64,000 bases of DNA from the NCBI GenBank assembly GCA_001949185.1, contig BDGG01000004.1, forward strand, positions 2,071,620 to 2,135,619, read 5' to 3'. Shown here one piece after another: positions 18,940 to 39,589 of this stretch (positions are counted from its first letter, which is position 1; each line of letters begins with the position of its first letter). Below the pieces are notes generated by a model. That model did no database searches, was not told the DNA's origin, and was given only the letters and a program-made list of their open reading frames with translations. The position numbers were made by a program, and so were the translations under genes. The DNA comes from Ramazzottius varieornatus. Its lineage: Eukaryota > Animalia > Tardigrada.

Positions 18940-20615
18940 TTATCCTTTCGTCTTCTTTTTAGATTCAATCAAGTCGAAACTTCCGGTAATGTGCGCGATA
19001 AAGGCTTGAATGTAGGCAACACCTGCCAAAATATAACAATTATTTATGACGGAAACGATGATCATAAGGATCAGAAATCTCATGAGAACGTTTCTTACCT
19101 TCACCAGTCTTTGCACTGCAAAGAAAAATCACAAAAATTAGTGAAAGAATTTCGGTGTTGCTCACTACGGAAATAACTTGATTGAGCCTCACCTAATAAG
19201 GAAAGGCTGGGGGTAGCAGTTTGGAGAGCCGAACTTATCTCGGATGGTCCGCACTTGTCCCACAACCTCCAGTCGTTGTGAATCCTTCACAAGGTCGATC
19301 TTGTTAAGCATAATCTATAACAGAAGCGAGATCGTTTGCATTTCGACGATCGATTTCTCATCTTGGCTTACGCAGTAAGGAAGTTGACATTCTTCCAGAT
19401 ATTCTAAGATCGAAAGATCCCGCTTCACCAGCCCTTCAGCTGCATCGACCATTACAAAGGCCAGTCGTAAACTACAAACAAGAATAAGAGAAACTTACAG
19501 CATACGGTAGCTTGAATTCTTCCATTATGCGACAGTCTTCAAGACCCACACTAGACGCCATATCGAACATCAGGAACGTCCGAACCAGACTGTGCAAGCA
19601 CATCACCCCGGTAACTCCGATTTCGTCAAGAAAACTTCAGAGCGGCATAAGAAATCTCAGATATCGGAAAATGCTAGTCTTACTTCTGCCGGTGCCGAAG
19701 AAAATTCTCTACGCAGTCCCGGAAATAGTGCGGCTGGTTGAATCCGTAGCCGGGCATATCCACTAAGGTGAAGTAGTCCTTCACTTGGTAAAACTTGAGA
19801 GTTTTTGTGAATCCCTGCAAAGGAACAGGTACATTACATTTAACCGTCTCATGAACGACATTCATCTATGCAGCCGAAAGATGTGGGACATGGAAAGCGT
19901 ACCGGCGTACTGGAAACTGGAACCTTAACAAAAGGCGCCTTGTGGAACAGGCAACTGATCATCGAGGACTTGCCCACATTGCTACGACCCAAAAAAGCAA
20001 CCTGGAAAGCACGCCAGATATAGTTCCCAAAACCCACTGCTCAGCAAAACATGCAGTACGATATAAGATACATTTGTCCAGCTTCCCGAAAAATTATGTC
20101 ATGTTAAGTGGACATTCATACCTCTGGCAGATTATAGATGGGAGCCTTTTCGATACGGATGGTAGATTCCACTCTCCGAATATCCCTCGGTCTTTCAGAC
20201 GTGAATACTGTCTGAGCTAATTTCATTTCGTCAACCAAAGGACGATAGGGCCTCTCGTTTTCATCGAAAAGAGGAGTCTGTAAAGACATTGGCACACGTG
20301 TAGTGATTTTCTTTCAGTGAATAGTGCAGCTTACATATGCAGCAAGGTGACTCTGACCTGTAGGAGTTTCTGCAGCTTTTCCGTTGGATCGCAAAACAAA
20401 TCTGCTTGGGACACACTGATTCGTGGCGGAATATGGACTAGAGGATCATTCAGGATTGTCTTGAACGTCGGTTTCTGACCACAGGCAGGGGCGGACGTTT
20501 GAAATTCGCGGACTAAGGTGAAGATGTCGGATAACCGGTGCTTTTCCTTGGGCGACAATCCATGCCGCGCAGCAGTTCTCCGGGTTAAGTTGCAGGCGGT
20601 ACTCAGCAAAGACAT
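18940..20615 (-). CDS. GTPBP8: EngB/YihA-family GTPase GTPBP8 with a probable mitochondrial presequence
   Basis: G1 VAFLGRSNVGKSS, G2 TP|GFTK, G3 LVDMPGYGF, G4 NKID; C-terminus AFIAHITGSFD; Arg-rich N-terminus; about 8 exons. Confidence 0.88.
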
Positions 20616-20845
20616 TCCTCACTATATCCCCAACCTGCCGGTTCTCCAGCATCAAACCGAAACAGCGAACGAAACTGAAGGATCCAAATTCCGGGAAGAT
20701 CAACCAAATGACAACTCGCGAGTTCCGATCAGCTGTTTTCCGCATGACATCATGGTCGAGTTATTTTCTTCTGATTTCTTGATTGATTTTCTGATTTTAG
20801 ACGATGCGATCAATCAAGCTCAGCGCCCAAGGACGCGTTAATATT

Positions 20846-21000
20846 TTGCGAGAGCTCCGCCCAAAAGGTTGGCCTTCCAGCAGAGCTTTAGAATGAATCA
20901 TAGACCGCTCGAGTCATCGTACAAAGCTGTTCAGGCATTCGAAAGCCCTTAAATTGGGAAAACTATGGCAAGCCTGAGCCTAGGGCGGAAAGATCAAAGG
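20846..21000 (+). repeat. Cassette arm A, copy 1 (inverted homolog at 37532-37687)
   Basis: gagctccgcccaaa.gg.tggc.ttccagc.gagctttagaatgaatca...gagtcat.gta.aaagctgttcaggcattc.aaagccctt...atggcaagcctgagc...gcggaa.gatcaaagg aligns to the reverse complement of 37532-37687 at roughly 85% by eye. Confidence 0.9.
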
Positions 21001-21238
21001 ATGGGAACCAAGGTTCATTCACATCTGACGTAATAAAAAGCCCAGACCGGTTACCACGCCCATTGACCAATAGACAGAACGGGTCAATAAACCAGCTGCG
21101 ATTGGGCGGTCAACCTATCAATGCCAGTCGCTAGTATCGGTGGTCAAACATAGCAAAACCAATGGCCGACGCTTAGTGCTCAAGCTAGAAAGCCCAATGG
21201 TCATCCACTAGTGGTCAAGACAGCAAGACCAACGGCTA

Positions 21239-24003
21239 AGGTCGGGATCACAACAGGGAGGGGAGCACTCTCGTACAGAGAAATTTCTGAGCCGCTGCCC
21301 AGATCCCTTCCTAGAGAAAATCTTGAGCGATCTTCCGACTTCGGAAATCGTTTTGCATGTTTTGATTGACAGGATTTGCTCTTGGTCATCCCGCCATCGG
21401 GGATATTTTTCTTGATTGTCCGCACGCTACAGACCAACCCGCCCACCGTGGACTTTGGACTCTGACGTCAGTCAACCTGTTTTGAAAGTTTTGTCCCATA
21501 CTTCCGCGTTTTACATCGGGTACCACAGCAAGCGCCCAAGCCGTCCGCAGTCTTTACACGAAAAGTTCTACGTTGTAATAAGGGTTCGGCTAATTTATGG
21601 TAATGAGGATAATTATTTTCTTTGAATCTACAAACTATTACGAGCGTGGGACGAATTTCGTAATCAAGCGGGACACGGTAAAGACTAAAACGGAAGCAAA
21701 GCTAGGTCATTGTCATCGTCAAGATCTTGATCCAAGGGCTCCAGGTCTCCGCCCTCTTCAGCAACGTCCTCATCGGCTTGCTCGCCAACAACTGCCTCAA
21801 TGCGGTCTCCCTTTGTGTCGATATTCCAGTAGTCATCCTCAAGCTTGATGCAGTGAGCGAAGAGCTTGGGGAAGTCTTCTGGCTTGAAGATATCAGCAGA
21901 TTCTTCCCACAGCTTGATCGGGTCAGGCAGCTTTCTGGTGGTGTTTTGCTTGGCGACATACCCTTTGCGGCGGGCCCAGCATTTTTCAATCGGGTTAAAG
22001 TCACAGTGGTAGGGCAGCAGACGAACTGTCTAGACGCCTTCTCCGGTCTTCAAATAGTCATCCATGTAGTACCTGTCGCCCACGTGATTCTTCAGAAAGT
22101 CCGTCACCTTCTGCCACAGCTCGGCCACCAGTTCCCGCGCACCGACCTCGATCCTATGGTCAGTCAGCCACTGCTGGATTTATTTCTTCACTCTCTTGGG
22201 TCTTCTGAACTGTGGCATCAAGCGGGAATGATAACTTGCGTTTTCCAGCACGATCACAACCGTGTCATATCCATAGAGCCGAGCAAATTCTTTCAAACGG
22301 GGAACTACCACCTCCTTCATGAACCTAAAACCATAACAGCCAAAATTTATCATGACGTCATCGAAAACTTGAAGCATTGGCAATCCGTCACGGTAAGAGT
22401 TTTATCACAAATTCTTTCACAATCAGAAAGACCCAGTCGACATCTTCATTTTGTCTGCTCGGACCGGAAAGATCCAACCAATGGTTTGCGAGATATACTC
22501 AACACACTCAATTTTGCCCACCTTTTTTAACTCTTCTCAAAATCAAGCCACTTGATAGACCCGGTGCAACGAATGAAAAGACCATCAAAACAGATCATAC
22601 AAAGTTTGATTGATTGATTTGACAGATTGGCTTACTTCTCGTAGTTGTGGTAGTCCCCAGTGTGCTTTGAGGCTTTGTCCACATCCGGGAACGAATCCCC
22701 TATCCGTCACCACGTCGAAAATGACCAGACGCTTCCCCGATCCACTTGGATGCGACTGTCCGCAGTCCTTGCACAGGATTTGGGCTGTGCCGGTAGATTT
22801 TTCTTTGTCGAGTTCGATCCAACTCTTGCGAAACTGGTAGTTCTCGATTAAGTAAGTCTCATCCAGGAAGGCAATCAGGGCATTCTTCTGTCGAAACTGA
22901 CGAACCGCTCGGATGTAACGGATACGGCTGACTTTGAGGCTTGGGTCACCAAACAGGTGTTTAGTGGACCGATCTCGATATCGGAAGCCCATTCGGCGTA
23001 ACACACGATACATCGTGGATTTCGACACCTGAACACCGACTTTCTCCTCCACCAACGGCAGCAGAGATTCCACCGTGATGTGTATCTTACTCTTGTACTC
23101 CCGGTGAATGATCGCACGAATTTTCCCGTATTCCGACTCCTTCAACAAGTGCCGACGGACGCCCGCGACACCCTCCATTTCTTCCGCCTCGACAACCGGG
23201 TCCAAGGTTTCATTTACGTCATCTTCCGGAACGGTGGTGCTCGCGACTGCAGTTCCGCTCGGTGGACCAGTTATCAAATCCCAGTTCTTAGTGATGCTCT
23301 GGATGGTGCGTGGACTTCGCTGGCACAGATGCGCGATTGCCTTACGGCGACCTGCCAGAGTGGTCAGAGTATATTTATTCGACCCAAAAAACGACTGACC
23401 CAGCACTTTCCATAAATGGGCAATATGCCTCACATCCACGGGATACAGAGAAGAACTGGAAGACATCTCTCAGCTTTCTATTAGTTTTGTCAGACTACGG
23501 TATACGCTATTGTAGAATACTGTGGTGCATTTGAAAACTGAGGAGACGGTTTTCGCTTGTGTTTATGGAAGCTCTTATCTCTCCAGTTTTTTCCTGGCTG
23601 ACTCTTCATACTTTCCAGCTGTGATAAGAGAAGATAACAAAGAAGTTGTCTCGACTCTATCGTTTTCCAACGTGCAGCATGAAGGTCAGATGCCAGAAGG
23701 CCGATAAGAATATCGTCTGTGCCGGTACCTTTTACATTTCACGCACGCAACAGATTTCATTTTTTGCCTGCTGACGTCAGAGTCCAAAGACCACGGTGGG
23801 CGGGTTGGTCTGTAGCGTGCGGACAATCAAGAAAAATATCCCCGATGGCGGGATGACCAAGAGCAAATCCTGTCAATCAAAACATGCAAAACGATTTCCG
23901 AAGTCGGAAGATCGCTCAAGATTTTCTCTAGGAAGGGATCTGGGCAGCGGCTCAGAAATTTCTCTGTACGAGAGTGCTCCCCTCCCTGTTGTGATCCCGA
24001 CCT
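21239..24003 (-). mobile_element. IS630-Tc1-mariner DNA transposon (DD~84E, Sailor-like), 2765 bp, 233-bp TIRs, TA target-site duplication
   Basis: TIRs 21239-21471 and 23771-24003, with 1 mismatch seen; TA at 21237-38 and 24004-05; internal transposase on the minus strand. Confidence 0.93.
21700..23466 (-). pseudogene. Decayed DDE transposase with HTH domain and a probable intron (22325-22635)
   Basis: HTH VSKSTMYRVLRRMGFRY; D1 AFLDET; SGSGKRLVIFDVVTDRGFVPG; GDYH (frameshifted); D2 mutated to E in VIVLENASYHS; LPYHCDFNPIEKCW. In-frame TAA (~22180), TAG (~22030) and frameshifts. Confidence 0.88.
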
Positions 24004-24279
24004 TAGCCACTAGTGGTTAATCTACCAAGATCAATGGTCAACCACTAGTGGTAAACCAACCTACCCACCCACCCTGGCGATTTTATCATTGCACGATCAT
24101 CTACTTTCCTACCTAGTTACCCAGCCGCGTCGCTGCCGATCGCGCAGCAGGCAGCACGAGTTACGTCATACGCTGTCGGTCGTACCATTGTCCGGCCGGC
24201 AGGGTCCTGAGTGTAATCAATTTTTTGTTAATCAACTAGCTGTTTTCGCCAGTTGATTCGTACGACTTTGATCGATCAG

Positions 24280-24421
24280 ACACAGAATCATGATTCAGCA
24301 AGAACTGAAAGAATTGGAAAAACCAGAAAAAAATCGGGGAATCATCCTGAAAAAAGGATCGTGCTGTCTGGAGCTCGAGCTTCCTCTGATGAGTTTGCGA
24401 TTCAGAGTCCGCTTGGGTATC
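24280..24421 (+). repeat. Cassette arm B, copy 1 (inverted homolog at 36221-36372)
   Basis: cagaaaaaaatcggggaatcat.ctg...aaaggatcgtg.tgtctggagctcg.gcttc.tctgatgagt.tgcgattcagagtccgcttgggtat matches the reverse complement of 36221-36372. Confidence 0.9.
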
Positions 24422-24661
24422 TTTCTGAATTGTTCACGAAGATGTGTGGCGTGACTGGCGTCATCTACAAGTTGCATAATCCATAAATACAGTAATTCGA
24501 AAATTTTAGAATTACGAGTACACAAGGAGACTGAAGGAGTGAAGGAGAAACTTCTTTTTATTTATAGTAACTTAGTTGAAAGCTTCTAGTCCTGGAGACT
24601 CTTGGCGTCTGTCTCAGCTGGCTGTCTAAAGATCTGGTAAGCGACATTAGATTAGTGAACC

Positions 24662-25659
24662 ATGACATCCCTTGTAGGTTCAGCTGCCAAGAGACAGTCC
24701 TCGTGGGACGAGGAGGAAATGCCCATCTCGAAGAAACGTCATCGGTCCTCGCCCGTTCCTATGGACTCGTCAGCTCCGCCATCACCCACATCTCCTCCAC
24801 GGCCCAGCCATGCCTTACCGGCTTCAAGCTCCCCTTTCCCAGACATTTCTACAGGTACGATTGATGTTGTATCCCGCGGTTGACGTCCAGTGGAACTGAC
24901 GATAGTCACATCAGTTTTCCTTGTCACCACTATGCAGGGATGCGTAATCGTCTAATCAGTGGCTGATGCTGTTATGTTTTCTAGATCCTGGATTTTCGGA
25001 CAGGTTGATAAATGAACTGCGGAGAGTTCAGCTGCGCGTAAACAATCATCACCGCAAGTCGGATGGAGAACAGGACAGTCAATCAGACCACAAGAAAGAA
25101 ATTAACGCGTTCAGCCCGTCCACTGTTCGCTACGTATGCTCCAAAGTTTTGAAGGATCGCGAAAATGAAGTGCGGACTGAATATGATAAGGTCTTGAACC
25201 AGAAGCTTTCGGGTAAGTTCTGTAATAGCGTTAGAATTTTCGTCTGGCGAAAGTGCTGGCGGTTGATTATTACTGTATATCATGATAATTAGCCTTACTG
25301 TACTGCTGGGCGGAAATCGGAACGGAGATCAGAAGTCTTCTCCTTCCAGAGCAATACGATACGTTTGTGAAGTTCGTACAGGAACGAGTACAGCAACAGC
25401 AGTCCACATCGGAGCCATCTTGTAAGTTCAGAGTTTCATTTAGAAAAAACGGTCGTGCCGAGAGGCGAGCGGCTCATTTATCGTCCTTACTTCGGTGCGT
25501 TGCGTTATTGGAAGGGCGAAGTCACAACTGAAAATTATCACCGCAGAATTTATCGATTATTTCGAATCTTGATAATCGTTTTCTTGGCTGACTGGAATCC
25601 CGTTGTGGAAATCCGAATAGCAATTTCTAAAATGCGTGTTCCTTGCAGATTACTCTTGA
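24662..25659 (+). CDS. akirin: Akirin
   Basis: N-terminal AKRQ...SKKRHR NLS; FSPSTVRYVCSKVLKDRENEVRTEYDKVLNQKLS|EQYDTFVKFVQE...EPS|YYS* (canonical C-terminus SYVS). Confidence 0.92.
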
Positions 25660-26289
25660 TGGGTCAGCAGTGAAACCGGAACTCGATAGTCATGGCTATT
25701 AGCTATAGTCATGGTACCCGGAAGTACCACCGCAGTCTGTTTTCTCTTGAGGTGCGGTTTTTGTACATAGAATAAGTCTTTCTACTGTGGTGTAGTTGCT
25801 CATGTTCAAAGCTTCTCTTCCAGTATATGTTACTTTTTGTGAGCCGTGAATGCTTAGCTGGTTTTTGTATTCAGGTTGGTTTCCTTGTTGTCTGTTTTGT
25901 ACCAGCTGTTGTATGTATATGTTCTAGGCGATACCGCCATTGTGAGGTGGGGTTCGCTGGATAAGGTCTTCCTGTCTTTGCGTGATGTCTTTGAGATTTT
26001 GTTTTGTACCTATTTGATCTTTGACTGCCTTCCGTTTGAAGTAAAGACTGACTGCTGCGGTGGTTGGCCGGCTCTTGGCTAAAAGACCACTGGTCTACCA
26101 TCTTGTTGCGTAGCTTTGGACTTCCTTATGGTTCTCGGGGAAGCCGGCGTCATAAGGTGTTGCCAGGGATTGGCGGTAGCCTTCCTTCTGCTTTGTCTGG
26201 ATGGTCATCCAGTTTGAGTGCACCAAAGGATGGATGATGGACTGAGGAGAATGTTAAGTTGACGTACGGAATGTTTATGACGTTATATT

Positions 26290-27719
26290 ATGTCCAATCA
26301 TTTTCCCCCTGGTGATTTTGGGAATTTGCGTTCACGATTGGAAAAGCTCGCGTTATCGCAAAATGTAGTGCGGCAAATTTACGGCACCACTAAATCGCTC
26401 ACTAAAAGTTCAAGTAGGAGCGAAAATTTATCTGTCAAGCCGAAATTATTAGACTTTCTTCGGGAAGAGGAACGCCGACATCTTGAGCGGGTCATATCTG
26501 TAAATGATCTTGTTCGAGTTTTACGGAAGAAGCAGCAGCAATGCGAAACCCAGTCTGCTCACACTACGAAAGCCATGCTGGATCGAGGTTTGGATGCATG
26601 CATATGATGTTAACTCTGTATGCGCATTCTGAAAAATAATCTCACGATATACACGTCTGTCGTTCCTTAGTTTACAGACGTCCTCTGCTGTGCGAGATTG
26701 CTAGAGATCCAGAGCTGACGAAAACTTGGAAAGATGAAAGAAGAACTGAGCCGCCCTCTGCCCGTCGTTCTGTTCACGAACCTGATTTTAGGAGTGGCGG
26801 CTATCCAGACAGTCGTACGTTCTCCGTTGCCGTTATATCTGCCTCGTGAATTTGTTTCCAGTTTTATTTTTCACTGTGTTGATGTTTTGACCGGAAAAGA
26901 CCGGTAGTCGGCATGTCTGTCTTTGTAGACCTTGATATGTCACACGGAGATTCCCTACAAGGGTCGGCTCGTCAGTTCAGAAGCAGAACGGCGGATCGTG
27001 AACCACCTCGTTCAGTTTCCTGTGAGCATCCTGGTTATTCAGAGGTGGACAGAAACGACCACCACATTGATCGCCGCGATGATCGAAGACCAAAGCAACC
27101 TTTTCCTACTTCAGTATCCGGTACCAGATGCACGCCGCGTAGGGACCGCTCAATAGAACACACAGCCACAGAATTCGACTCAGAGGAAAGTGTGCTAGCC
27201 GCCCAGGATGACAGAAGCTACCAGGCACCGAGGGACAGAATACCATCGCCCCATCAAAGACCTCGCACCGGTTTCTGTAAAGTCCATGGGTACACTCAGT
27301 CTGCCGACAGAAATCAAAACCGGCCATCGAACCATCCTCTACGGTCTTCGGTAATAAGTCCCGGAAAACAAAGAGGCAGAGAATTGTTTGATGATGACGA
27401 CGCTGAAGACCCGGACGAAAAGTACTCTTACTCTTTTGACTATTCGGAAGAGGTGCAGAGTGATGGACGGCATCACGTCTACCATCGTCACCTGCAGAAC
27501 CATCACAGACATGGAGATCAGCACGATTCACGGTGGCCAACTCGGACACACAAAAATAGGCTACAGGCTGACCCCTCTATTGACTATTCTTATCAGCTTC
27601 CAAACACATCGCTACGGAAAACTAGAAGTGTTCAGGTAGCAGACAAGAACAGAAACATGAGGGATACGAGAAAGTACCGGAGTTCGGAATGGGAATCTGA
27701 CTACGACCGGGGTCCTTGA
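26290..27719 (+). CDS. Uncharacterised 3-exon protein (~410 aa): helical N-terminus, long charged disordered tail
   Basis: Exons ~26290-26588, 26671-26814 and 26929-27719 join in frame through GT-AG introns; no family confidently recognised. Confidence 0.6.
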
Positions 27720-27928
27720 ACAGTTTTATTGGGTTTATTTTCGAAGTCTCTACATTCTACCTGACGTCGAACATCACTTGGGAAAACATTTGCAGATGTA
27801 ATATTACAAAATTACGAGCAACGTGTGATACATCATTTTATGTTTCTTCTTCATGTGAGTCCGTCTTTGAGTCTTTTTATCTTTTTTCAATGTTTCTTAC
27901 CCGTTTGTCTTCACAGTTTTGCTTACTT

Positions 27929-30900
27929 TTAAAGCTTTGTTCGGCCTTTATGGCGACTTTGCGGTCGTGTGTAATCCCCTCCTCCGTGTTTCAGCCATTC
28001 TTCTTGAAAATCCGATTCCAGAATTTCCGCTCCTCTTCGCTGCGTTAGCCCGGTATTCTCCAAGCTGAGCTCAAGCATCTCCGTATCGTCTTTTCCTAGA
28101 TCGAAGGAAATTGACTGACTCAGCGTTCTTGATTAAGTTCCTGATTGATAAAATCTTTAAGTATAGTTTACCTGCAACAAGTAGCACCGGAGGCTTATCG
28201 GAATGAATTTCCATCTGGCGAGCTATCCACGGTCCGTCGAAGTGGGCGTACCACAGACCACGCCTCGTCTGACTGATTCCGTTACTCGTGGAACGCATAA
28301 AAGGAATTCTGAAGTATCGCTGCTCTGACAGCGTTTTGTGAGCTCCATTCGACTTGGTGCCACCCAACAGGTCATCACTGTGTGCTGGAATTACAAAATC
28401 GTTATGTCCGCACAATCAACAGCTTCTTTACCATCCAAAAAAGGTTGATTTCATGATTTCACATACCATTTTCCATGATGGAAGTCGGAGCACGCTGGTC
28501 ATCGTGCTCATGGGGTTTGCGGTTCTTTGCTTTCCATGCGTGATAAACCTTTAGTCTTCGGTGAAACTCTTCCCGACAAGCTTCCAAAAGTTCCAAATCT
28601 ATCGTACTCAAAAAGAGCAATGAGTTATAGAACGTTTCAATCACAAGAAAATTTTCGGATCTGTACCGCATGACGTGTTGATCGCATCACGAAGTTCCGC
28701 GTACTTCCATTTCGCCAAGTCATACTTCTTATTGGCCGCGCTCCGCTGTACGTTCACTGACCTGCAACAGTAAAGTTTTAGCTTCGGTAAGGACCGTGTA
28801 CTGCTGAATGCGGCGAAAACAACATACCTTCGTAGAGATCCCGTATCGTCCACGTGACCCTCCCCTTCCTGAGCCAACCTAATAGCCAGCGCATGGTCCC
28901 TTTCTTCTTGCAGTTCGCGAGTTTGCTGGTCTCCCATCTGTTTTAGCCTTTCTTCGGCCAGTTTAGCCTATAGTAAAACAGCGAAAGATACACATAGCTG
29001 AATTTTTCTGGTAGTTTGAACTGTTTCACCGCAAGTTTCTTGTTGTCCTGTTCCATCAGCCGCGCTCTCTCCTCTTCAATCTTTCGTCTTTCTTCCAGCT
29101 GAATTCGCTGAAGGCGTTCTTCTTCCTCGTCTTTCTTCTTCTTGATATCTGCTTCTCTTCTCTTGCGTTCGTTCTCCATTTCCTCTTGCAGTTTGCGGAT
29201 GCGTTCTTGTTCTTCTTTGGTCTTTTGGGCATGAACGCGCTTCTGTAGGTCGTCCAAGGTTCGTTGAGCAGTATCTTGTATGGCCTTCACGGACACATCA
29301 ATGCTTTTGCCGTCGACTTTACCGTTCTTGATATCGTCTCTCAGTTTTTCAATGGTCTGGGTCAGCCGTATCACCTGATTCAAGGCAGCTTCTCGGTCAA
29401 TCTTCAGCTTTTGCGCCATTTCTTTCATTTCCTCCAGTTGATTGTCGAGCATCCGGAGAGCCTTCAGTCCGAGGATTCGAGGTCGATACTTCTTCATCGC
29501 GAGGTGCTTTCTCAGATGACTTTGCAGCTTGATCAGCGCGGCCCTTCGGTACAGAATCTTGTTTCTCAGCTTCAGTACCGTCCAGGCCACGTATTGAGCT
29601 TTCCGGAACCTTGCGCGAAGCAGCCATTGCTTCACCTTAGCCACAAGTACTGCTAGGTTCTTCGGGTCAGCTTTTAGCATTTGGTCAAACCTGTCACAAA
29701 GAACGTGCAGTATACAAAATATAAACACAATTTAGCTGGGGTGATTGGCTGGTTAACTTACTCTGCAAATTTTCCGGGTTTGAAGAAGACTCTCGTCATG
29801 CCAAACTTGTAGTCTGTGTCGTTCAAGCCAAGTGCTCGAAAAAGGGCTTTGCAGAACAACCTTGGATCCAAGTTGGACAGTCCCTTAGGTAGAAAGTCTT
29901 TGTACATGGCGTACAAATCAGCGAAGTAGCATCGAGATGGATACCCCTGCTGCATCAGTTGCAAGACACTGGTCATTCCGGAACACTGCAGTTGGTTTAA
30001 GATAAGGCCGCCTTCGAAGAGCCCATCCATCATGGACATGTTAGGCTGAAAAGTAAAGCATGAATTGATGAAGGGAAAGCAGGTCATCGTGGCGGGACTC
30101 CCTTACCTTGATACAGCGAATGAATGAAGTTCCGGTGGAATTCAGCTTCTCCATGAGTTGCTTCAGCTGAGTTCGGAATTTGCTTCCGACACTGATGAAA
30201 GTTAGCTTTCCTTGGTTGGTAGACTGGAACATGCCATCTTTCTCGTTCCTGAAAAGGAACTTTAGGTTTTGACTTTCTTGGATCAGAGCTTCCAGTGAAG
30301 CGTGGAGTGCGTCGTTGTTCTTCTCAATGAACTGGCTGGTTTGGTAGCAGACCGCTCCGGCAAAGTGGCGCACTAGAAACCCCTCTTCGTCTCTTAGGTC
30401 CCGGTGTTCTTTTAACTTTGACTTTCGAGGAATGGCCAGCCGGAAGTGGGCTTTGTGACGTGTATGCACCATCTGGGTGAAGTTTTGGCTGTTGGGTTTG
30501 GGTAGCTTGCTCTCCTACAGACCAAAAACTGTGAGGTAGGTATCTTGCTACCTTGACTCGAGCTTTATTGGTCGTACCTCATCGAGCATGTCGAACAACC
30601 CGACGTTCTTCCCTTCGATTAGATCTGTGAATAAAGGACAGACAATATTTTTCCTGTGAGGTTCCTTTCGTCACACTACGCAACAGCAAGGCGCCACCTA
30701 CAGACTGGATTTCGTCTGTCGGTACTTGAGACCGAATCACTTACCAATGCAGTCCGCATTGTCCACAAAGGCAATCTTTCCCACATTCAGTCCCTCTTTC
30801 GCGTAGAGCTCTTGCTCGGATTTCAAGATGCGGTCGTTGAAGAACTGTTGAAGCTTCTCGTTTGCGTAGTTGATGCAAAATTGTTCTATACGTCAAGCAG

Positions 30901-33069
30901 AGCAGTTGAATATTTAACAGTGGCAGTCAGCAATGCTGTGGGGAACTATCGTACCGAAGCTGTTGACAGTGAAAAACTCTGCAAAGCAGAAAACGATTGA
31001 TTGACCTGCAAAAATCCATACTCATTTGGAAAAATTTGATAATTTTGCTTACCGAATCCTGCTATATCAAGGATGCCAATATAATACTGCGAGGCGGAAA
31101 ACGGAATGCATTCGTTGATTTTCGCAACGATAAAGTCGAAGAGGGCTGAATAAATGGCCTTCGCTAGAGCGTCCCTGGCACTGGCCGCTTCATATGGCTT
31201 TAAGTTGACCCTACAAAGCGCAAGTCGTAAGCACAAGGATCTGAAAGTTTTAGTCACACAGTCCGGCCAATTAAGGTCCTGATACCGTATGACAGTTCCC
31301 TTCATGCCACCTCGAGCAGCTTGCACCACTCTACAGGTCAGTGAGTCCTTCATTTCCTCCTTGTCCACGCCAAGCAACGCGCTGGCGACGATCAGAGACT
31401 GGTCTGTATTCTTTGTGATGCGACAACCGTCTTTGGTATCTCCAGCGTCCTCGAAGGCTATATTCCCCAGATGAAGTACCGCCGCAACGGTCGCATAAAC
31501 GAGCAGCTTTTCCTCATCGGTAAGCCCAAGATGACTGCAACAACAGAAGTGTCAGAAACTCGACGTGGGTTGTCTTTACGCGGAAGTGCAGTACCTGAGG
31601 GATCTGTCAGTTATGCTGAAATCTCGAATATCGTCCACGACCGCATCTTGCAGTCCGACTGATTGTAGGCCCCTCGAGGCCAATATCTTTTGATTTGTTT
31701 TACCCGCGAAGAACTTTGTGGCGCCCCGGTTGAGGTACTGGTAGTCGGCTGGGGTGGTCAAGCGGAACTTTGACTTGATCTCGTCAGGTGCGCCCGCCAA
31801 CAGCTGGAAGAAGATGTGGTAGTTCCTTTCGCCTTCGCTCTGCAGACAGATGCGGGACTTTTCCAGAAGATAGTGAGAGATGAAACCTCCCGCCACTTGT
31901 TGCTAAATCATAAAGTCTTAATGTGAGCTTTGTGTGCAACCTACAAACTTGAGCGCACTTCAAGAGGTGGGATGTGACGTGTGGACGCTACCTGCTTGGT
32001 GAAATGGATCTCGACAAATTTCCCGAACCTACTGCTATTGTTATTTCGCATGGTTTTGGCGTTCCCGAAAGCCTCGAGTATCGGGTTCGCTGTAACAGGT
32101 TGAATACGTAAGAGAAAAACAGCAATACGCGCTTTCGGGTACCAGTGTTACACGCTTTGCACTAACCTTCCAAAATTCGCTCCTCGAGCTTCCCGGACTG
32201 AGCGCCCCAAGATTCACAAAGGTATCGAATGATGTACTTGGTTGATTCTGTCTTACCAGCTCCTGCAAAGATCGTCGAAACCTTCTCGTAGATGGAGACA
32301 ATCCCTCAGAAGTCAAATAACGTACCTACCTGATTCACCGCTGACGATTATGCTTTGTGATTGCTTCAGGACCCTCATGTCGCGAAACGATTTGTCAGCT
32401 GAAAAAGGGTAAAGAGACAGACTTATAAGGTGAGTTGTTTTCTTTGAAAGTCGCGCTCGTACCGATTGCGAACACGTGTGGTGGAAGAGTCCCCAGCGAC
32501 ATGCCTTGGTACTGAAAAGCATTTGCGAATGAGAAAGATATCATACGGCGTTGATTGGTCCCGGAATCTGACCTTCTTTATGGCGGCCGGGGAATATAGA
32601 TCCGGAAGTGACTTGTACGGGTTGACCGCAATTAGGATGTTAGCCACGTAGGTGTAAATAAGGTCTTTGGAATATCGCAAACGCAAATTATGCAGTAGCG
32701 TCGCCTCATTAACATGCATAAGTGCACCTAAAACAATTCCACTGATCATCCAAGCAAACACGCAGCTGATACACTCCATTGTTTTTCAATGTCTTACAGT
32801 TGTCATCCACGGTTTTCTTGTCATTGTCTTCCGCGGCAAACACCAGCTCGTACGGCGCCGAAATTTTCTGGAAAACACAGGAAAAGTAAGAGACATTGTA
32901 ATTTATAAAAAGGGAAGTGGCGTTATTCGTGTAACCGACGGACCTTGCCATCCTTTCCGGGTTCGATAAATTCAATGGTGAGCTCGTTCGCCCCGATGTC
33001 CTCGATTCTGCCTAACCGATATCCTTCCACTGGGTCCGGAGCCCAGACTTTCTTCTTGGTATCAAACAT
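27929..33069 (-). CDS. MYO6: Unconventional myosin VI
   Basis: [17 protein letters not shown]; VSGESG|AGKTESTK P-loop; LDIAGF; SAH domain; [17 protein letters not shown] (RRL motif); [17 protein letters not shown] cargo-binding domain. Confidence 0.97.
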
Positions 33070-34686
33070 GCTGACACGTTATTCCCAAACAAGTATTCGC
33101 TTCAGGAGGAATAAACTCAAGTCCTGTTCAAGTGCAGTAGCAGCAAAACGAGGAGTACCTCCCCCTTACTGTCCCCATCCAGTTTGGTACATGGGAGAAA
33201 GGTCCTTCTCAGATTCAGCTCTTAGTGGTCACGGACCCATCGAGATAGTGGCTCATGAGAAATCACGCAGGTGTGATCAAACGGTAGGCAGACATGAAAA
33301 TACTACGTATCCCTTCCTTGAGTTGGTGACTCGGCGATACTCATAAGCCTAGCTAACTGAGCCATATGTACGTCGATAAATTGTGTACACCGATCGACTT
33401 CATTCAAATCCAGAGGCGTGCACAGGTGTAGTGCTATAGCGCTGTGCTGAGTCGGAAGACTATAAAACCTGATAACCAGTTCAAATAGAAGCCTCTACCT
33501 CGTTGCACAAACTCAACGAAAAGTGAGTACGTGGTCGAAAGTGGATCATGCGTGAAACCCTAGTACAACAACATGCCGGCATGCTACTCTTTCAACTACC
33601 TGTGGCCATATGAGGAGCCGCGACAGAAGGCCACTAAAGATTAATTACCATGTTAACAAAGCTCAACCGTGGAAGTGAGCAAACTACAGGTATCGCAGCC
33701 TCGCGGACATCACTGTCTAGAACACGCTGCTCTGTAATAAGCCCATATTCAAATTCAAGCGCGGTAGCCTTGGTTCACTTGCCTCTCGGACCTGATCAAG
33801 TTAGCGCTATTTTCCCCATTGTGAAGATCGCTTCGACCACGCAAACCATACGCGGGCACTGGCGCACAAAGAGCCAATTGGGCGTTTTGGAAACAGATAG
33901 GTCTACAGAGAAAAAAATTTTCACAACCAGAGAGTATTTGGAGAAGGTTCGTGAAGTTTTGAGCCAGGGTTCCCGAAGCCCCGACCGCGGAATGACCGTT
34001 AAGGTGTTCTCTTTTTGTCAGGAACAAGTCCAGCGCACAGGTGCCCGAGGGAAAAGTTCGGCCAGAGCCCTTTTATGATGTGCCGGGCCATGTTCAATGT
34101 GGGAATCCACGTGGACCACCAGCCCTACTCATCAAATCTGTCTCCTGAAAGTAGCCAGGCTAGCTATAAAGCCGGTTTGACGCTTTGATGAATCGGTCTA
34201 GCTCAAAATAAGACGTTGCTCGGCTCTTGTCTGTATTTCGGCTTATCGTCAAGGTCCACCGAGCCACGAACAAAGTCTCACGATCAAAAGTCATCTGCTC
34301 TACGTGTGGTTGTACTCGTGTGAGGAGAACCAGTATGAGATACTGCTCGAAGCATCCACCTTGCATCTACTTAAATTTCGTTATCACATGATGGATTACA
34401 AAAGGGCGGAATCGCGGTACTGTGTCTCAATCTGTCAAGATAAGTTTTTGGACATGAAGTAAATGTGACTTTTCGCAAAGATTAGTTCAATATTACAATA
34501 AAGGAAAAAGAAATATCATAAAAACTATTTTTCTTCAGTTGAGCAAAGTTTTAAACCACAACGTGATGGCTGTAGAAATTTCGAAAAAAGGCGCGCCTAC
34601 TACTAGCAGTACTTATGTTTTTGTGCCATACCGTTGCCGCGCTGACGTCATAGGACCAGATGCTGGACTGCGCTAAGTTGTATGGG

Positions 34687-35919
34687 TCATCTTGGGCACA
34701 TCGCATGTCTGTAGATAACACCTCTTTGTGAGAGAAAGCACCGAGTGAGTCTTATACTTTATGAAGTAAATACCTGCCACCATCTACGGGTAGATTTGCC
34801 CCAGTGATGAACGAAGCGGCATCGCTTGCAAGAAACGTTATGGCATTCGCTACTTCCTCGGCTTCGCCTGGTCGACCGAGTGCATGCGTCGTCTTCGACC
34901 TTTCCAGAAAAGCAGCATAGGCTTGTTCATCCATTCCGCCTCGTTTTTGGAGCTCTGTTATCGTGACCCCGGGGTTCACCGAATTAACACGAACTTGTTT
35001 CGGAGCCTGCAAATCAACACCAACTCGAAGGATGAAATCTTATACAGCATCTGCAGTCTTTAAAGAGCAAACAAACAATTTACCAGTTCCAAAGCAACAC
35101 AACGAGTGAACTGATCCAATGCGCTTTTCGAAATATTGTAGGCAAGAACTCCAGCAAAAGAGCGCAGCCCGTTTACACTGCTGACATTCACTGAAAAGAA
35201 ATAAAACATGTGAAGCCTGAACTCTGATGCGCAACACAAACGTTTCATCAAAAAAGTCTTCGAGCAATTTTGTTAAATCTGACTAACCAATATTCCCCTT
35301 CGAAGCGGCCAAATGTGGAACGCACAGTCTGGTCAGGGCATACACGGATCGGACATTGACGTTCATAACCCGATCGTACTGTTCCATGGAGGTAGTTTCG
35401 ATCGTGCCCGTCTCCAGAACACCTGCGCACCTCAGACTACATTTTCGAAGAAGATAGTAAAGACTGCGTAGATAGAGGAACTCACCTGCGTTGTTCACTA
35501 GGATGTCCAAGCGTCCGTACTTCGCCATGGTCTGCAGCACAATCCCCTCTAAATCATTTTCATCCGTTAGTTCTCCAAGAACCATAAACGGCTCGCCGTG
35601 CTGGGAATGCTTCGTGCCTGCTCAGAGAGGAACTGAGCTGTGAGTTAGGTGAGAATAGTCCGTAACCGAAGATTCCTAGGCTTGAACTTACATTGCCGCG
35701 AAACTTCCGTCAAGTTTTCCATGTTCCTTCCTGTTAGCGACAACCGTGCTCCAGCCTTGGCGAACGCAATACTCGTCGCTGCTCCTGCAAAACTCGAACT
35801 AAGCATCATCCACTCACTATCGAATGGCACAAGCTGAATCTTGTAAGAAGACTATATGCGTGCTCACCGATTCCACTGCTCGCTCCTGTAATCAGGGCAA
35901 CCTTCCCCGCCAGCTGCAT
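34687..35919 (-). CDS. Classical short-chain dehydrogenase/reductase (FabG-like)
   Basis: MQLAGKVALITGASSGIG, LDILVNNAG, YNISK catalytic YxxxK, VRVNSVNPG, ends DGGR|HAMCPR*; multiple spliceosomal introns. Confidence 0.92.
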
Positions 35920-36220
35920 CTTCCCATTTGGATCGCCACGGACTACTGCAGGTGTCACTGGAAGTCTGGCAGTCAGCTCCACTACCAGCTGCGATCCAGG
36001 TTTGGTATCTCTTGACGTCTACAGGAGCACAGCAACTTCTGCAAAAGAACATTAGAGCCTCAAAGAGAATATTGCCACAAAGAAACAACAACATTCAACA
36101 GGTGATATCATAGAGGCTAATCAAGAAAGAACGTGTGCTTAGTCAATCGTTCGTGCTGGTTCGTCCATCTTCATTATCGCAATCTCGGTAATCAATTTTC
36201 CGCTTTGGTGTTTGAACTGG

Positions 36221-36372
36221 AATACCCAAGCGGACTCTGAATCGCAGACTCATCAGACGAAGCCCGAGCTCCAGACAACACGATCCTTTACGCAGAATGA
36301 TTCCCCGATTTTTTCTGATTTTTCTAAATTTTCGACGAATTTTTCTAAGTTTTCGATGAGCCATGAGTCGTG
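36221..36372 (-). repeat. Cassette arm B, copy 2
   Basis: Reverse-complement match to 24280-24421. Confidence 0.9.
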
Positions 36373-36494
36373 ATGACGGATGCGATCAATCAATTCTGTA
36401 CCTAATCATTCGAAGATGTTGGCGTATTGGTTAATACGGAATTAATAATCCTGTCGATAGTACCACTTGGCCGCTCTGCACGATCAACAGGGTA

Positions 36495-37400
36495 TACGTA
36501 GACCGGCCAACCATGGGTCTTGCTACTGTCACTAGATTGATTACCAAAAGTTGACCGTTGGTCTTGCTAGACTGATCACTGGTGCCTGACCATTGTAGCG
36601 AGAATTTCGCACAGGATTTAGAATTGGAAAGTGTCCACGAGTGTACGAGCACGCTGAGTGTATGACTGACAGGGGATTTCCACGAGGTATTAAGCCAGCC
36701 CTGCAGGCGGCGTATCTCGAGAAGTATACAAGCTAAAAGCTGTTAATTTTTCGAGACTCTTTTTCTCCTTCAGTTGAGTTTCGATCAGTAAAGAGCAGTA
36801 CGAACTCCAGCTTTTGCCGGTCTTCTGTAAAGCCTAATCGGCTGTGTTAGAGGTCTACGAGGTCTTTCAATCTTTCTTAGTGGATAAACCTGTCGATGGT
36901 CAGCGAAGGCTGAGGTTCCTGCAGGATCAAAGTCGAGGACGCTTGGTTAAAGCCCTTTGGAATACCGGGATCAACTGGCGGACACTGGCGAGGTAAATCT
37001 CTGAGACGAACGAGTAGCCTACAGGTCCTAAAAAAAGAGAGGATGACTCGTGTGACGGATGGGAAAGTATCAGTGGTGGCTTGTCTGGAAGACTTGGGAA
37101 GTGGGATATTGTACTGAACAACAGGTAGAGCGCCGGCACCATCAGGTTCTCTTTCAACTCGAATATTAAGCTGAAGCTGACGTCCGTTTAAAGTTCCTCG
37201 TTAGTCGGACGATAAGAATTTTTAATCGAGGTGCAGTGTGAATTAACCTACCGCCTGAGGCAGCAATTTTGTTGCAAGCTTTTTGCCGTGGTGAGAGTTA
37301 TTCACGCTACACCATTGGTCTTGCTCGATTGACCATTAGTATTGGTGGGTCGGCCACTGGGTAATACCAGTCTTAGCTAACCGCTAGTGTACCAGGTTGG
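36495..37400 (-). repeat. 35-bp tandem array, copy 2, split by a TG...CA insertion
   Basis: Minus-strand unit (cc)aatggtcaggcaccagtgatcagtctagcaaga (35 bp) with neighbours ccaacggtcaac... and ...aatggtcaatcgagcaaga match the copy-1 unit. Confidence 0.8.
36594..37311. mobile_element. 718-bp TG...CA element with CCAT target-site duplication (solo LTR or non-autonomous Ginger-like element)
   Basis: Ends TGTAGCGAGAAT...ATTCACGCTACA (12-bp inverted termini, 1 mismatch); CCAT at 36590-36593 and 37312-37315; removing it restores the array unit; no convincing ORF. Confidence 0.75.
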
Positions 37401-37531
37401 CTGCTGTAGCAGGTGCTGGTAGTTGCTGGCGATGCTCACGTGGCGTATGTGCTGTAGCTTATATGTGGTCCAATCGCGTACGTACAACAGAAGACTAATG
37501 GGTAGAGACCCCTTTCAGTGCCGAGAAATTT

Positions 37532-37687
37532 TCCTTTGATCTTCCGCCATAAGCTCAGGCTTGCCATTGTTTGCCCGAATGCAAGGGCTTTAGAATGCCT
37601 GAACAGCTTTCTACTATGACTCAAGCGATCTCTGATTCATTCTAAAGCTCCGCTGGAAAGCCAGCCGTTTGGGCGGAGCTCCCGCAA
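37532..37687 (-). repeat. Cassette arm A, copy 2
   Basis: Reverse-complement match to 20846-21000. Confidence 0.9.
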
Positions 37688-37855
37688 TTCAAAAATTTAA
37701 AACCTCTACAAACTTCTCTGCTATCTGCCGTTTTCTCCTTGCCGGGATCTAATTGTCACCTGGTAGGTGCTGCGCGAAAACGCCAAGGTAGGCAGATAGC
37801 CACATGTAACAATGTACACGATCGATAGTGTGTATTTCTAGGACAGCAGTCGGCG

Positions 37856-39589
37856 ATGACGGCGAAGGAGATCGCATTTATAGCAATGCTGATGGAGGAA
37901 CGATTCGGAGCTGGACATGCACAAGTTAGCCGATTACTCTTAGAAACCGGCCTCATGCCCGTCACGGCTGTCTACCGAAGATGCCGACGGATGAATCCAA
38001 AAATAAAAGACAAAGTTCTGGAACAGATTTTGCACACGTTCTTTGAGCACGGCTTGCTGCTCGCTCAAACCTTCCCAGACCTCGCGGAAGACGGACCATA
38101 CATCTCTTTCGACCTGCACCACGCGTTCCTGACTATGGCTGAGCCAGTCATGTGCTATGCCGTTGAAGAACTGCTCGGTGACGACGCTGCTCGGGTGCTT
38201 TGCTTGGTTCTAGGTCTCGGAATGCCCAAAGCGGAAAAGGTGTTCGCTCTACTGGCACAGAAGGAAAGTTGGACGAGGGATAATGCGGAGAAAGTCATCA
38301 TCAAGTTACTCAAAACCAAGGTTCTGTCAGCGTTGGACTGTTTTATGAAGTACGACGACGATGAAAGGAAGATGGAGGTAGAGATGGTCGCAAGAAAGAA
38401 CTATTGGTCAAAGTTGGGCTTAATGGTTAATCGGAATCGTTTGATGGTTGCGGCTCTACTCTACATGACACAATCGAAAGTGGAGAACGAGCCAGCTTTG
38501 TCCTCGTATGGCTCCGATGTGTACCTGGGTCTTTGCCGAGCGTCCCTTTTTACGCCACTACGGACAGATTACCTTTGCGATGACTTGTTCCTACCTGTGA
38601 CAGCCGACGACGTGCTGCGAAACATCGAACACAACGTGGAGGAAATGAACATTGGTATCGTTCGACAAAACCTCGATGGAATCGTGGCTATGGTCGATGG
38701 ATTCCTACGTGAGTAGCCCTTGAAGCTATGAAGTCCAGATCGTTTAGTGGTAAATATTCGAGGTTTATCCAATTTCATTGAGTAATTATGGAAGCGGCAG
38801 AAAGTGAGATCGGCCATGTTAGATCGTCGCCGTGTTACGTCATCGCGGCATTACGCGATGACGTCGCACGTATGGTATCTGCGGGTGGCCGACTCAGTTC
38901 GTCTCTTTGTGCCTTTATCACTTCGAGTCTGACAGTCCGAGACGACAATATTCGTTTGTCAACCGTCTCGTCACCGTATTCTTTGTGCTGTTGTAGAAAC
39001 CGTGGACGATGGATACGCCATCAGAGGACCAAAGCTTCTCGGAATGTGGGCAGAAAGTATTCTGTACGAACAGCTCAAAGCGGAGTTCCCGCAAGTTGGA
39101 CTAGCCCGTGTCACCATGCAGTTCCTCCTTCGGCATCCGCGACCCTATGTCCAGGCCAAAGCCGTGGAAATGGACCTTTGTAGCAGTACTCACGCCTTAC
39201 GTTATGCGGTGAACGAGCTAGCGCGGTGCGGCTTCGTGGACCTCATGGGCACATCGCAAGCAGCATCGTTCGAGCCTGGACGTATGGAGTTGTTCCTCCA
39301 CGTTAACCTACCGAGACTCTATCGACAAAAGATTTTGCCGTCTCAACTACAAACTCTTTTTCGAAATCATTATTTGAAAAGCACTTTGAAAAAGTCGCAG
39401 GAAAATGTCCCGCCGTCGGAGTGCGATGAAAAGCACTGCAGGATGGAGTTGTCTTTTGCAGACTCGCTTTTGTTTTCCTTAATGTACATCAAAGCTTGTG
39501 GCGCGATCACCGATGAGAAGAGCAGTAGCGAGGCTTACTCGCTCCTAGAGTTCTTTAGTCGTAATACTATCCCAGAAGCTGAACAATAA
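37856..39589 (+). CDS. POLR3C: Divergent RNA polymerase III subunit RPC3/RPC62 homolog (2 exons, intron ~38709-38996)
   Basis: MTAKEIAFIAMLMEERFGAGHAQVSRLLLETG resembles human MTQAEIKLCSLLLQEHFGEIVEKIGVHLIRTG; VEELLGDDAARV; exon 2 DDGYAI...EPGRMELFLHVNL follows the RPC62 winged-helix pattern. Confidence 0.72.
38831..38870. repeat. Intronic hairpin ACGTCATCGCG-gcatta-CGCGATGACGT
   Basis: Perfect 11-bp stem extended by CGTG/CACG. Confidence 0.7.

Follow-up and report, generated by a model that had tools for sequence, protein, structure and literature searches.

The HINE elements (Helentron-associated interspersed elements) are recognised as non-coding repeats with defined boundaries, optional central tandem repeats, a T-rich or TT target, and a variable T-string at the boundary (PMC4067079). 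Their subterminal repeats are 12-15 bp long, often palindromic, and set back from the termini by 2-4 nt on the 5' side and by 38-60 nt on the 3' side; a 3' palindrome of 5-10 bp lies 8-35 nt from the 3' end, and DINE-1 also has a short 5' inverted repeat (PMC4067079). Cg_HINE consists of a left flank, central repeats, and a right flank, and it inserts into T-rich targets with no duplication (PMC7492417). The HLE2 elements carry short terminal inverted repeats and have a stem-loop on the 3' side of the right repeat; they insert between T and T, and DUF6570 serves as their marker (PMC11417382). In the 55.83-Mb assembly of the tardigrade Ramazzottius varieornatus, nearly all of the repeats, 19.7% of the genome, are listed as "unclassified" (PMC5531438). 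Here, a 64-kb stretch from this species (contig BDGG01000004.1, positions 2,071,620 to 2,135,619; hereafter the window) was analyzed. An earlier note, made from the sequence alone, had described two copies of a cassette in the window, in which a 35-bp tandem array lies between two arms (arm A and arm B). Two readings were offered there: a non-autonomous element similar to Helentron/DINE elements, or a domesticated bidirectional-promoter module. The present analyses suggest that the cassette is a member of a non-autonomous HLE2-type family, and that the two copies are ordinary, independent insertions into bidirectional promoters (probability about 0.65).

Repeat finding was run over positions 20000-38500 of the window, and the arms were compared by BLAST and pairwise alignments. 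Copy 1 is located at 20846-24421 on the + strand, and copy 2 at 36222-37687 on the - strand; no third copy was found in the window by BLAST. Arm A of copy 1 (20846-21001) aligns with 37687-37532 over 156 bp at 88% identity, and arm B, 107-130 bp in size (24314-24420, extending to about 24290), aligns with 36327-36222 over 107 bp at 90% identity. Repeat finding recovered the same arms as inverted matches: 20846-20958 with 37575-37687 (88%) and 20956-20990 with 37542-37576 (89%) in arm A, and 24328-24420 with 36222-36314 (91%) in arm B. As shown by pairwise alignment, the similarity between the copies begins at ..TTGCG(A/G)GAGCTCCGCCC and ends at ..CCGCTTGGGTAT. Each copy has sharp outer boundaries, beyond which the flanking DNA is unrelated. 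The two copies share the module order and the relative orientation, as the earlier note had described. Without their nested insertions they measure about 809 bp and 752 bp, in agreement with the earlier estimates of ~810 and ~745 bp.

In copy 1, arm A carries the element 5' end (20844-21001, +) and starts with the T-string TTTT (20844-20847), followed by GCGAGAGCTCCGCCC. The adjoining subfamily-1 linker (21002-21139, +) contains CCAAT, GC-box, and CRE-like motifs and is common to at least 13 other full-length copies. The left part of the array (21140-21238, +) ends in the TA target of a nested element; the right part (24006-24060, +) is followed by the 3' side of the linker (24061-24289, +) and by arm B with the element 3' end (24290-24421, +). 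Arm B has GGAGCTC 44 nt from the end, then a weak stem (CTCTGA/TCAGAG), and the terminus ...CTTGGGTAT. In copy 2, all modules lie on the - strand: arm B with the 3' end (36222-36350), the subfamily-2 linker with 35-bp-type repeats (36351-36595), which is common to at least 10 other copies and ends in an 8-bp duplication, further 35-bp-type repeats with the 5' side of the linker (37310-37531), and arm A with the 5' end (37532-37689), where the T-string on the - strand reads AATT.

The 35-bp array is real. Direct repeats spaced by 35 bp were detected at 21174, 21209, and 24011, and in the family consensus the units start at 310, 345, 380, and 415, exactly 35 bp apart, with 4-5 units in all. Each unit contains the palindrome CCACTAGTGG plus GACCAATGGTC, and units related to the consensus array are also present in copy 2. 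Tandem Repeats Finder made no call on the array, because the units have diverged and both arrays are interrupted.

The genome (55,842,812 bases in 200 contigs) was searched for both arms, a check that the earlier note had proposed, and the cassette proved to be a dispersed repeat with more than 100 copies. Arm A gave 140 candidates and arm B 119; the best 40 of each scored 87-95% identity and are spread over many contigs. The search for the 21-nt 5' end, with up to 3 mismatches allowed, gave 114 sites, 47 of them exact, and that for the 22-nt 3' end gave 55; both patterns, when reversed as controls, had 0 matches in the genome. The family comprises about 110-140 copies in at least three subfamilies, which have both ends in common. 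It has no coding capacity, with 100 aa for the longest open frame in the consensus. The cassette is almost certainly a mobile non-autonomous repeat family. No match to the family 5' end was obtained in a metagenome scan (0 matches), and no paper on tardigrade Helitron-type elements was found in the literature. Since the published repeats are also "unclassified", the arm family seems to be undescribed so far.

After removal of its Tc1-like insert, copy 1 (808 bp) aligns end to end with at least 13 other copies at 82-92% identity, and the copies of this subfamily diverge by 3.6-8.2% (Kimura two-parameter distance) from their own consensus. The interior of copy 2 has no match in the 13 full-length subfamily-1 copies; it matches at least 10 other copies elsewhere, which form a second subfamily. 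A shorter deletion form retains just the outer parts of the copy 2-type interior (at least 8 copies), and a mini-element of about 95 bp is made up solely of the two ends (32 nt from the 5' end, 48 nt from the 3' end). The linkers, once described as unrelated, are indeed unrelated between the two window copies, but each of them is common to many other copies in the genome. The per-column conservation along the subfamily-1 element is flat (0.93-0.98) and dips only in the array, where the unit number varies; the linkers of this subfamily are therefore as conserved as the arms, and the selection on the arms suggested by the earlier note finds no support here. Shared ends with exchangeable interiors are the subfamily structure of a non-autonomous element with cis-required ends, and thus provide no argument for host selection on the arms. 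As a separate observation, a segmental duplication of about 5 kb (L062 and L063, C3:5030000-5035300 and C3:5325800-5330800; 99% identity, 296 kb apart on the same contig) includes a full arm-family copy with nested inserts and a mini-element of ~95 bp.

The family inserts into T-runs without target-site duplication. Among 37-40 distinct 5' junctions, the four bases preceding GCGAG are T-rich (T in 32, 24, 33, and 35 of 37 copies), and TT stands directly before GCGAG in 34 of 40. The T-strings vary (TTTT, TATT, AATT, and others), and the base preceding them is random. At 34 3' junctions, conservation stops at GGGTAT and the next bases are random. Empty sites were sought with chimeric flank queries. 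The filled site L019 reads ..CACAAGTTTAAG/TTTT ACGAG...GGGTAT/GCCAGTC.., with the flank ...TTTAAG before TTTT. Its empty paralogue L013, 90% identical over 327 bp of flank, reads ..CACAAGTTTAAGTTTGCCAGTT.., that is, ...TTTAAGTTTGCCAG, ...AAGTTTGCC. The L019 element lies within a run of three T and adds two T, and any duplication is no longer than 1 nt; the cut may lie anywhere within the T-run. In 30 complete copies, tested at all plausible boundary offsets, no target-site duplication of 2-8 bp was found above shuffled left/right pairings.

Two family copies stand head to tail at L037:1400-1580 (C2:3880200-3880380), with one base between them (GGGTAT A TTGCGA), and the downstream copy is much more diverged. 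An abutting pair of this kind was considered as a signature of rolling-circle read-through and rejected; the partners differ in age, which fits insertion into a resident T-string better. A cluster of copies at L078 is rearranged and uninformative on this point.

The terminal structures were compared with the HLE2 inverted repeat, which is expected to measure 12-16 nt and to lie 2-4 nt inside the 5' end and about 38-60 nt inside the 3' end. The arm A consensus contains an 8-bp inverted repeat (AGCTCCGC, about 21 nt, GCGGAGCT), which most copies keep; in copy 1 its second arm carries mutations. Only 4 of 500 shuffles attained an inverted repeat of this kind. A motif common to the two ends, GAGCTCC (7/7 bases, or 9/11 with flanks), has a palindromic GAGCTC core and is located 6 nt from the 5' end at one side and 44 nt from the 3' end at the other. 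The 3' stem CTCTGA..TCAGAG lies 13 nt from the consensus end and is 5 bp long in copy 2. No terminal inverted repeats were found at the very ends of the family.

Both window copies are split by transposons of other families, which are younger than the cassette and not part of it. The insert in copy 1 (21239-24003, -) is a Tc1/mariner-like transposon of 2765 bp with a TA duplication at 21237-38 and 24004-05, and the family consensus has a single TA at this point (..CAACGGC-TA-GCCAC..). It is bracketed by a 238-bp inverted repeat at 100% identity (21234-21471 with 23771-24008), carries a transposase remnant on the - strand (293-aa open frame with HTH_33 / Tc3-type HTH domains), and has at least 12 full-length relatives at 93-95% identity. 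The insert in copy 2 (36596-37309, -) is a hAT-like MITE (miniature inverted-repeat transposable element) of 714 bp, with the ends TAGCGTGAAT / TAGCGAGAAT starting TAGCG and an 8-bp target duplication (CAATGGTG/CAATGGTC). It forms its own family of at least 15 copies, with identities given as 85-92% and as 77-92%. Intact copies of the copy 2 subfamily without this MITE were also found, and their matches overlap by 6-11 nt at the insertion point. Nested transposons interrupt about one quarter of the complete family copies, the two window copies among them.

Some further features of these inserts were observed. The Tc1/mariner-like family is about 2.8 kb long with unusually long (~235 bp), near-identical terminal inverted repeats; another copy is L065 (C7:671171-673991), and the family is also inserted in another arm-family copy. 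Numerous solo or paired fragments of its inverted repeats, at about 80% identity, suggest older MITE-like derivatives. At L074:500-3330 (C18:271200-274030), a fragment of the long interspersed element (LINE) type with Exo_endo_phos_2 and a short TWAGTC duplication is nested in a subfamily-2 copy.

RNA contigs from four runs of four studies were aligned to the copy 2 site. Their spliced joints are GT..AG or CT..AC, which indicates that the contigs are RNA. The genes flanking copy 2 are spliced and divergently transcribed. The + strand gene, labelled POLR3C in the earlier note, has a first exon in the 5' untranslated region (5'UTR) at 37727-37785 (+). The 5' ends of its contigs, at 37727, 37734, and 37753, lie 40-66 bp beyond the edge of arm A, where the cassette stops at 37687. 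Its 5'UTR intron extends from 37786 to 37839 or 37844, with acceptors 5 nt apart; the joint 37785 to 37840 was seen in two runs, and 37785 to 37845 in one. The - strand gene, labelled SDR, has its first exon at 35867-36091 (-); here the contigs have their 5' ends at 36061-36091, and arm B, which forms the cassette edge on this side at 36222, is 131-161 bp away. In run X5 an attB1-like adapter was present on both ends, which points to the ends of cloned cDNA. A short upstream open frame (ATGAAGATGGAC..TAA) was noticed at 36100-36180 (-), between arm B and the transcript 5' ends; it lies upstream of all the RNA contig ends and is probably not transcribed.

Both transcript 5' ends at copy 2 are in unique host sequence outside the cassette. 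The earlier view that almost no room is left for host promoters is thus wrong for this copy. If the 1466-bp insert is removed, the two transcript starts are about 200 bp apart. The insertion that gave copy 2 hit the centre of a compact bidirectional promoter, adjoining an A/T-rich tract. The GC box said to face the gene in both copies is the reverse complement of the conserved family 5' terminus, and it occurs in all of the ~114 copies whatever their neighbours are. The close fit of the cassette to its spacers is also expected from the genome, where 23.9 Mb of the 55.83-Mb assembly are intergenic and the genes number about 13,900 (PMC5531438), so that the mean spacer is about 1.7 kb and a 0.8-kb element fills most of any spacer.

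The situation is different at copy 1, where one contig begins inside arm B. The first 36 nt of this contig (X1; 771 nt, depth 296) are the end of arm B, starting at about 24385, after which it continues into sequence identical to 24422-24451, the flank on the right of copy 1. At least 36 nt of arm B are thus part of the Akirin-side transcript. Short RNA contigs matching the arm A consensus were present in two runs. These contigs cannot prove a true transcript start, and de Bruijn contigs break at repeats. Among the flanking open frames, a GTPase domain at 19849-20037 (-) is the only domain confirmed by Pfam; the names Akirin, SDR, and POLR3C are labels of the earlier note. A homology search with a 505-aa open frame of the window gave two distant unnamed matches only. 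The known exons are 93-134 bp long, and the codon bias is low.

The anatomy and the target suggest that the cassette is probably of the HLE2 class (Helitron2/Helentron, HINE/DINE-1-like). The family is multi-copy and non-coding, has a central array, and inserts into a T-run with a T-string and no target duplication, as described for HLE2 and HINE elements. The genome also contains 20 matches to Helitron_like_N (Rep) as well as PIF1 helicase, and DUF6570 lies directly upstream of Rep at three loci (C5:2538270, C8:1745351, and C7:997366). No APE endonuclease adjoins any Rep match, and for this reason Helitron2 may be a better label than Helentron. Two of the Rep loci, L075 (C8:1739500-1749499; L075:1867-7361) and L076 (C5:2532500-2542499; L076:1350-7764), represent a relic family of about 5.6 kb, 90% alike, with DUF6570 / Rep / PIF1 remnants. 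Their ends are textbook HLE2: a 17-nt inverted repeat, a 3' stem-loop, CTAG followed by T, and T on both flanks. The first reading of the earlier note, a non-autonomous element with an internal array resembling Helentron/DINE elements, is therefore supported by the dispersed copies, the empty site, and the lack of duplication, and also by the T-run target, the central array, and the HLE2-type Rep relics.

A possible mechanism is as follows. Arm A and arm B would act as cis-acting 5' and 3' ends recognised by a Rep/helicase supplied in trans, and the ends would stay alike while the interiors are swapped or deleted because only the ends are recognised; the sharing of the arms across subfamilies might be explained in this way. 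The 35-bp array would be the central repeat typical of HINE/DINE-1-like elements. Rolling-circle transposition might place the element into T-runs with no target duplication, and poly(dA:dT) tracts beside core promoters may serve as such targets, which might be the reason for the promoter-proximal placement. The two window copies would then be independent insertions into two compact bidirectional promoters; Tc1-like and hAT-like elements inserted into them later.

Several findings weigh against the HLE2 assignment. The inverted repeat between the 5' and 3' ends is not significant, being matched by 42 of 500 and 191 of 1000 shuffles. The 3' stem is just 5-6 bp, and DNA folding gave z values of 0.03 and 1.14, no better than shuffles. 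Only one empty site was found. The 11 sampled Rep-bearing loci (L066-L073 and L075-L077) share no ends with the arm family, no Rep match lies between a family 5' end and a 3' end, and no autonomous element with arm-family ends was found among the sampled Rep loci and the long copies. The long copies (3.6-10.9 kb) contain nested Tc1, PIF/Harbinger, hAT, and LINE insertions and are not autonomous partners; the autonomous partner may have been lost or have diverged. In addition, Rfam and tRNA-type explanations were ruled out by negative search only, with one chance long non-coding RNA match elsewhere.

These weaknesses leave some place for another or undescribed non-autonomous class without target duplication, such as a Crypton-type element (tyrosine recombinase) or another HUH single-strand transposon, which would use subterminal hairpins and insert beside a T-run. 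Such a class would fit the weak terminal inverted repeat and 3' hairpin and the failure to find a partner with arm-family ends, and the best-supported end structure, the 5' subterminal hairpin, would also suit IS200/IS605-style ends. It is nevertheless unlikely, as the anatomy and the target agree point by point with the published HINE descriptions, HLE2 Rep relics are present, and no Y1-HUH or Crypton gene was seen, although no search aimed at them was made. It is hardly credible that the family is an ordinary MITE, a retroelement such as a short interspersed element (SINE), or a structured RNA gene of the tRNA-like or hammerhead type. Arm B contains CTGATGAG, a motif suggestive of a hammerhead, and arm A of copy 1 has a weak B-box-like site (TTCGAAAGCC); however, the latter is mutated in copy 2 and in the consensus, and an Rfam scan of 20000-38500 at E<=1 gave no hammerhead, tRNA, 5S, 7SL, or other family in the arms. 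The family also has no A-rich or simple-repeat tail, apart from lacking target duplications and very-end inverted repeats.

The other two alternatives concern the role of the cassette rather than its origin. The domesticated module, in which the whole cassette would be reusable and under host selection for housekeeping gene pairs, accounts for the promoter-type motifs and for the position of both window copies between divergent genes (from RNA contigs for copy 2, and from the reading of the earlier note for copy 1). Two of two is not significant, however, with a chance of about 1 in 16 without any preference. More than 100 copies on many contigs with 3.6-8% divergence, arms no better conserved than the linkers, and nested insertions of 0.7-2.8 kb also speak against it; the arms of copy 1 stand 3.3 kb apart, and the flanking gene is nevertheless expressed. 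With the copy 2 starts in host sequence and the "GC box" at the terminus of every copy, this reading is very improbable. Local co-option of single gene-adjacent arms of a transposon family, as proximal promoter or 5'UTR, would add to the HLE2 explanation instead of replacing it. The Akirin-side start would come from arm B of copy 1; at copy 2, the POLR3C-side start lies 40-66 bp downstream of the GC-box-like 5' terminus, which would serve as an upstream element. The X1 contig and the RNA contigs matching arm A are consistent with this, and the copy 2 insert took away almost all upstream sequence of the + strand gene, which is still expressed in four studies. CCAAT is also frequent in the element, at 7.4 per kb compared with 1.5 per kb for the window, and GC-box and CRE-like motifs occur as well; but motif richness is not equal to activity. 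The copy 1 evidence is one contig from one run, which may be read-through from the element interior or from the nested Tc1-like element, and both copy 2 starts lie outside the cassette. Co-option is thus rather doubtful as a general account, and possible for single arms at one or two of the four arm-gene junctions.

The preferred reading, a non-autonomous HLE2-type family with ordinary insertions, has some consequences for this genome. For one "unclassified" family, the boundaries, the target site, and the subfamily structure are now described, together with a likely class. What looks like a "conserved promoter module" in a compact genome can turn out to be the ends of a transposon. An insert of 0.75-0.8 kb, which later grew to 1.5 and 3.6 kb, is tolerated by two housekeeping bidirectional promoters at 40-160 bp from the transcript starts, and one neighbouring transcript seemingly begins inside the element. 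These loci are convenient natural experiments on promoter architecture. A further idea has a small chance of being right: the family, with its palindromic, CCAAT-rich 35-bp array and its GC-box-like terminus, might be a portable promoter-proximal cassette, whose T-tract targeting repeatedly re-wired compact bidirectional promoters, and some arms might supply a transcript start (Akirin side) or the sole remaining upstream element (POLR3C side). Transposons are known to spread factor sites and promoters, such as the Helitrons with heat-shock elements in Caenorhabditis and the long terminal repeats with CCAAT boxes in mammals. The arm family might resemble them in that CCAAT, GC-box, and CRE-like motifs are dense within it and in that a 5'UTR or transcript start appears to come from one copy; it differs from them in that most of the evidence here favours passive insertion.

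Canonical Helitrons (HLE1) have 5' TC and 3' CTRR ends with a hairpin about 11 nt upstream, and insert between A and T. The arm family is similar to them in the lack of target duplication, the subterminal 3' structure, the occurrence of non-autonomous derivatives, and the frequent placement near genes. Membership in HLE1 was rejected, as the arm family has T(T)GCGAG and GGGTAT at its termini and is found in T-runs, unlike the HLE1 ends and the A-T target. A cut-and-paste MITE (DDE) was also rejected; the family has no very-end inverted repeats and no fixed target duplication, whereas both nested elements show both. The L075/L076 relics have the same end layout as the arm family, in which the left repeat is close to the 5' end, the right repeat precedes a stem-loop with about 5 nt after it, and both flanks carry T, although their terminal sequences are unrelated to arm A and arm B. 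Their 3' stem-loop (AGTGGTCA..AACCACTAG) resembles the palindrome of the 35-bp unit (ACCACTAGTGGTCA), with about 12 positions in common. This post-hoc resemblance hints that the central array might have been derived from a multiplied HLE2 termination hairpin.

The closest likeness is to the HINE elements, including DINE-1/INE-1 of Drosophila and Cg_HINE of oyster, which are non-coding and shorter than 1 kb, with HINEs present in hundreds of copies (PMC4067079, PMC2374699, PMC7492417). The arm family differs from the HINEs in that its end-to-end repeat has only 7-9 of 11 bases and its 3' stem only 5-6 bp, neither being significant; a Helentron/Helitron2 with the same ends was not found in the genome, and the likeness rests on the published descriptions. 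The similarities are more numerous. Conserved left and right flanks enclose a central tandem array that differs between subfamilies. A T-string marks the boundary, insertion is T-rich/TT, and there is no target duplication. A palindromic subterminal motif is found within a few nt of the 5' end and again about 40-60 nt before the 3' end, and a short stem lies near the 3' end. The short 5' inverted repeat of DINE-1 is also present in the arm family. Structural and genome-wide comparisons suggest that the arm family is new but otherwise of a known kind: an ordinary non-coding mobile element, and unlikely to be a domesticated module.

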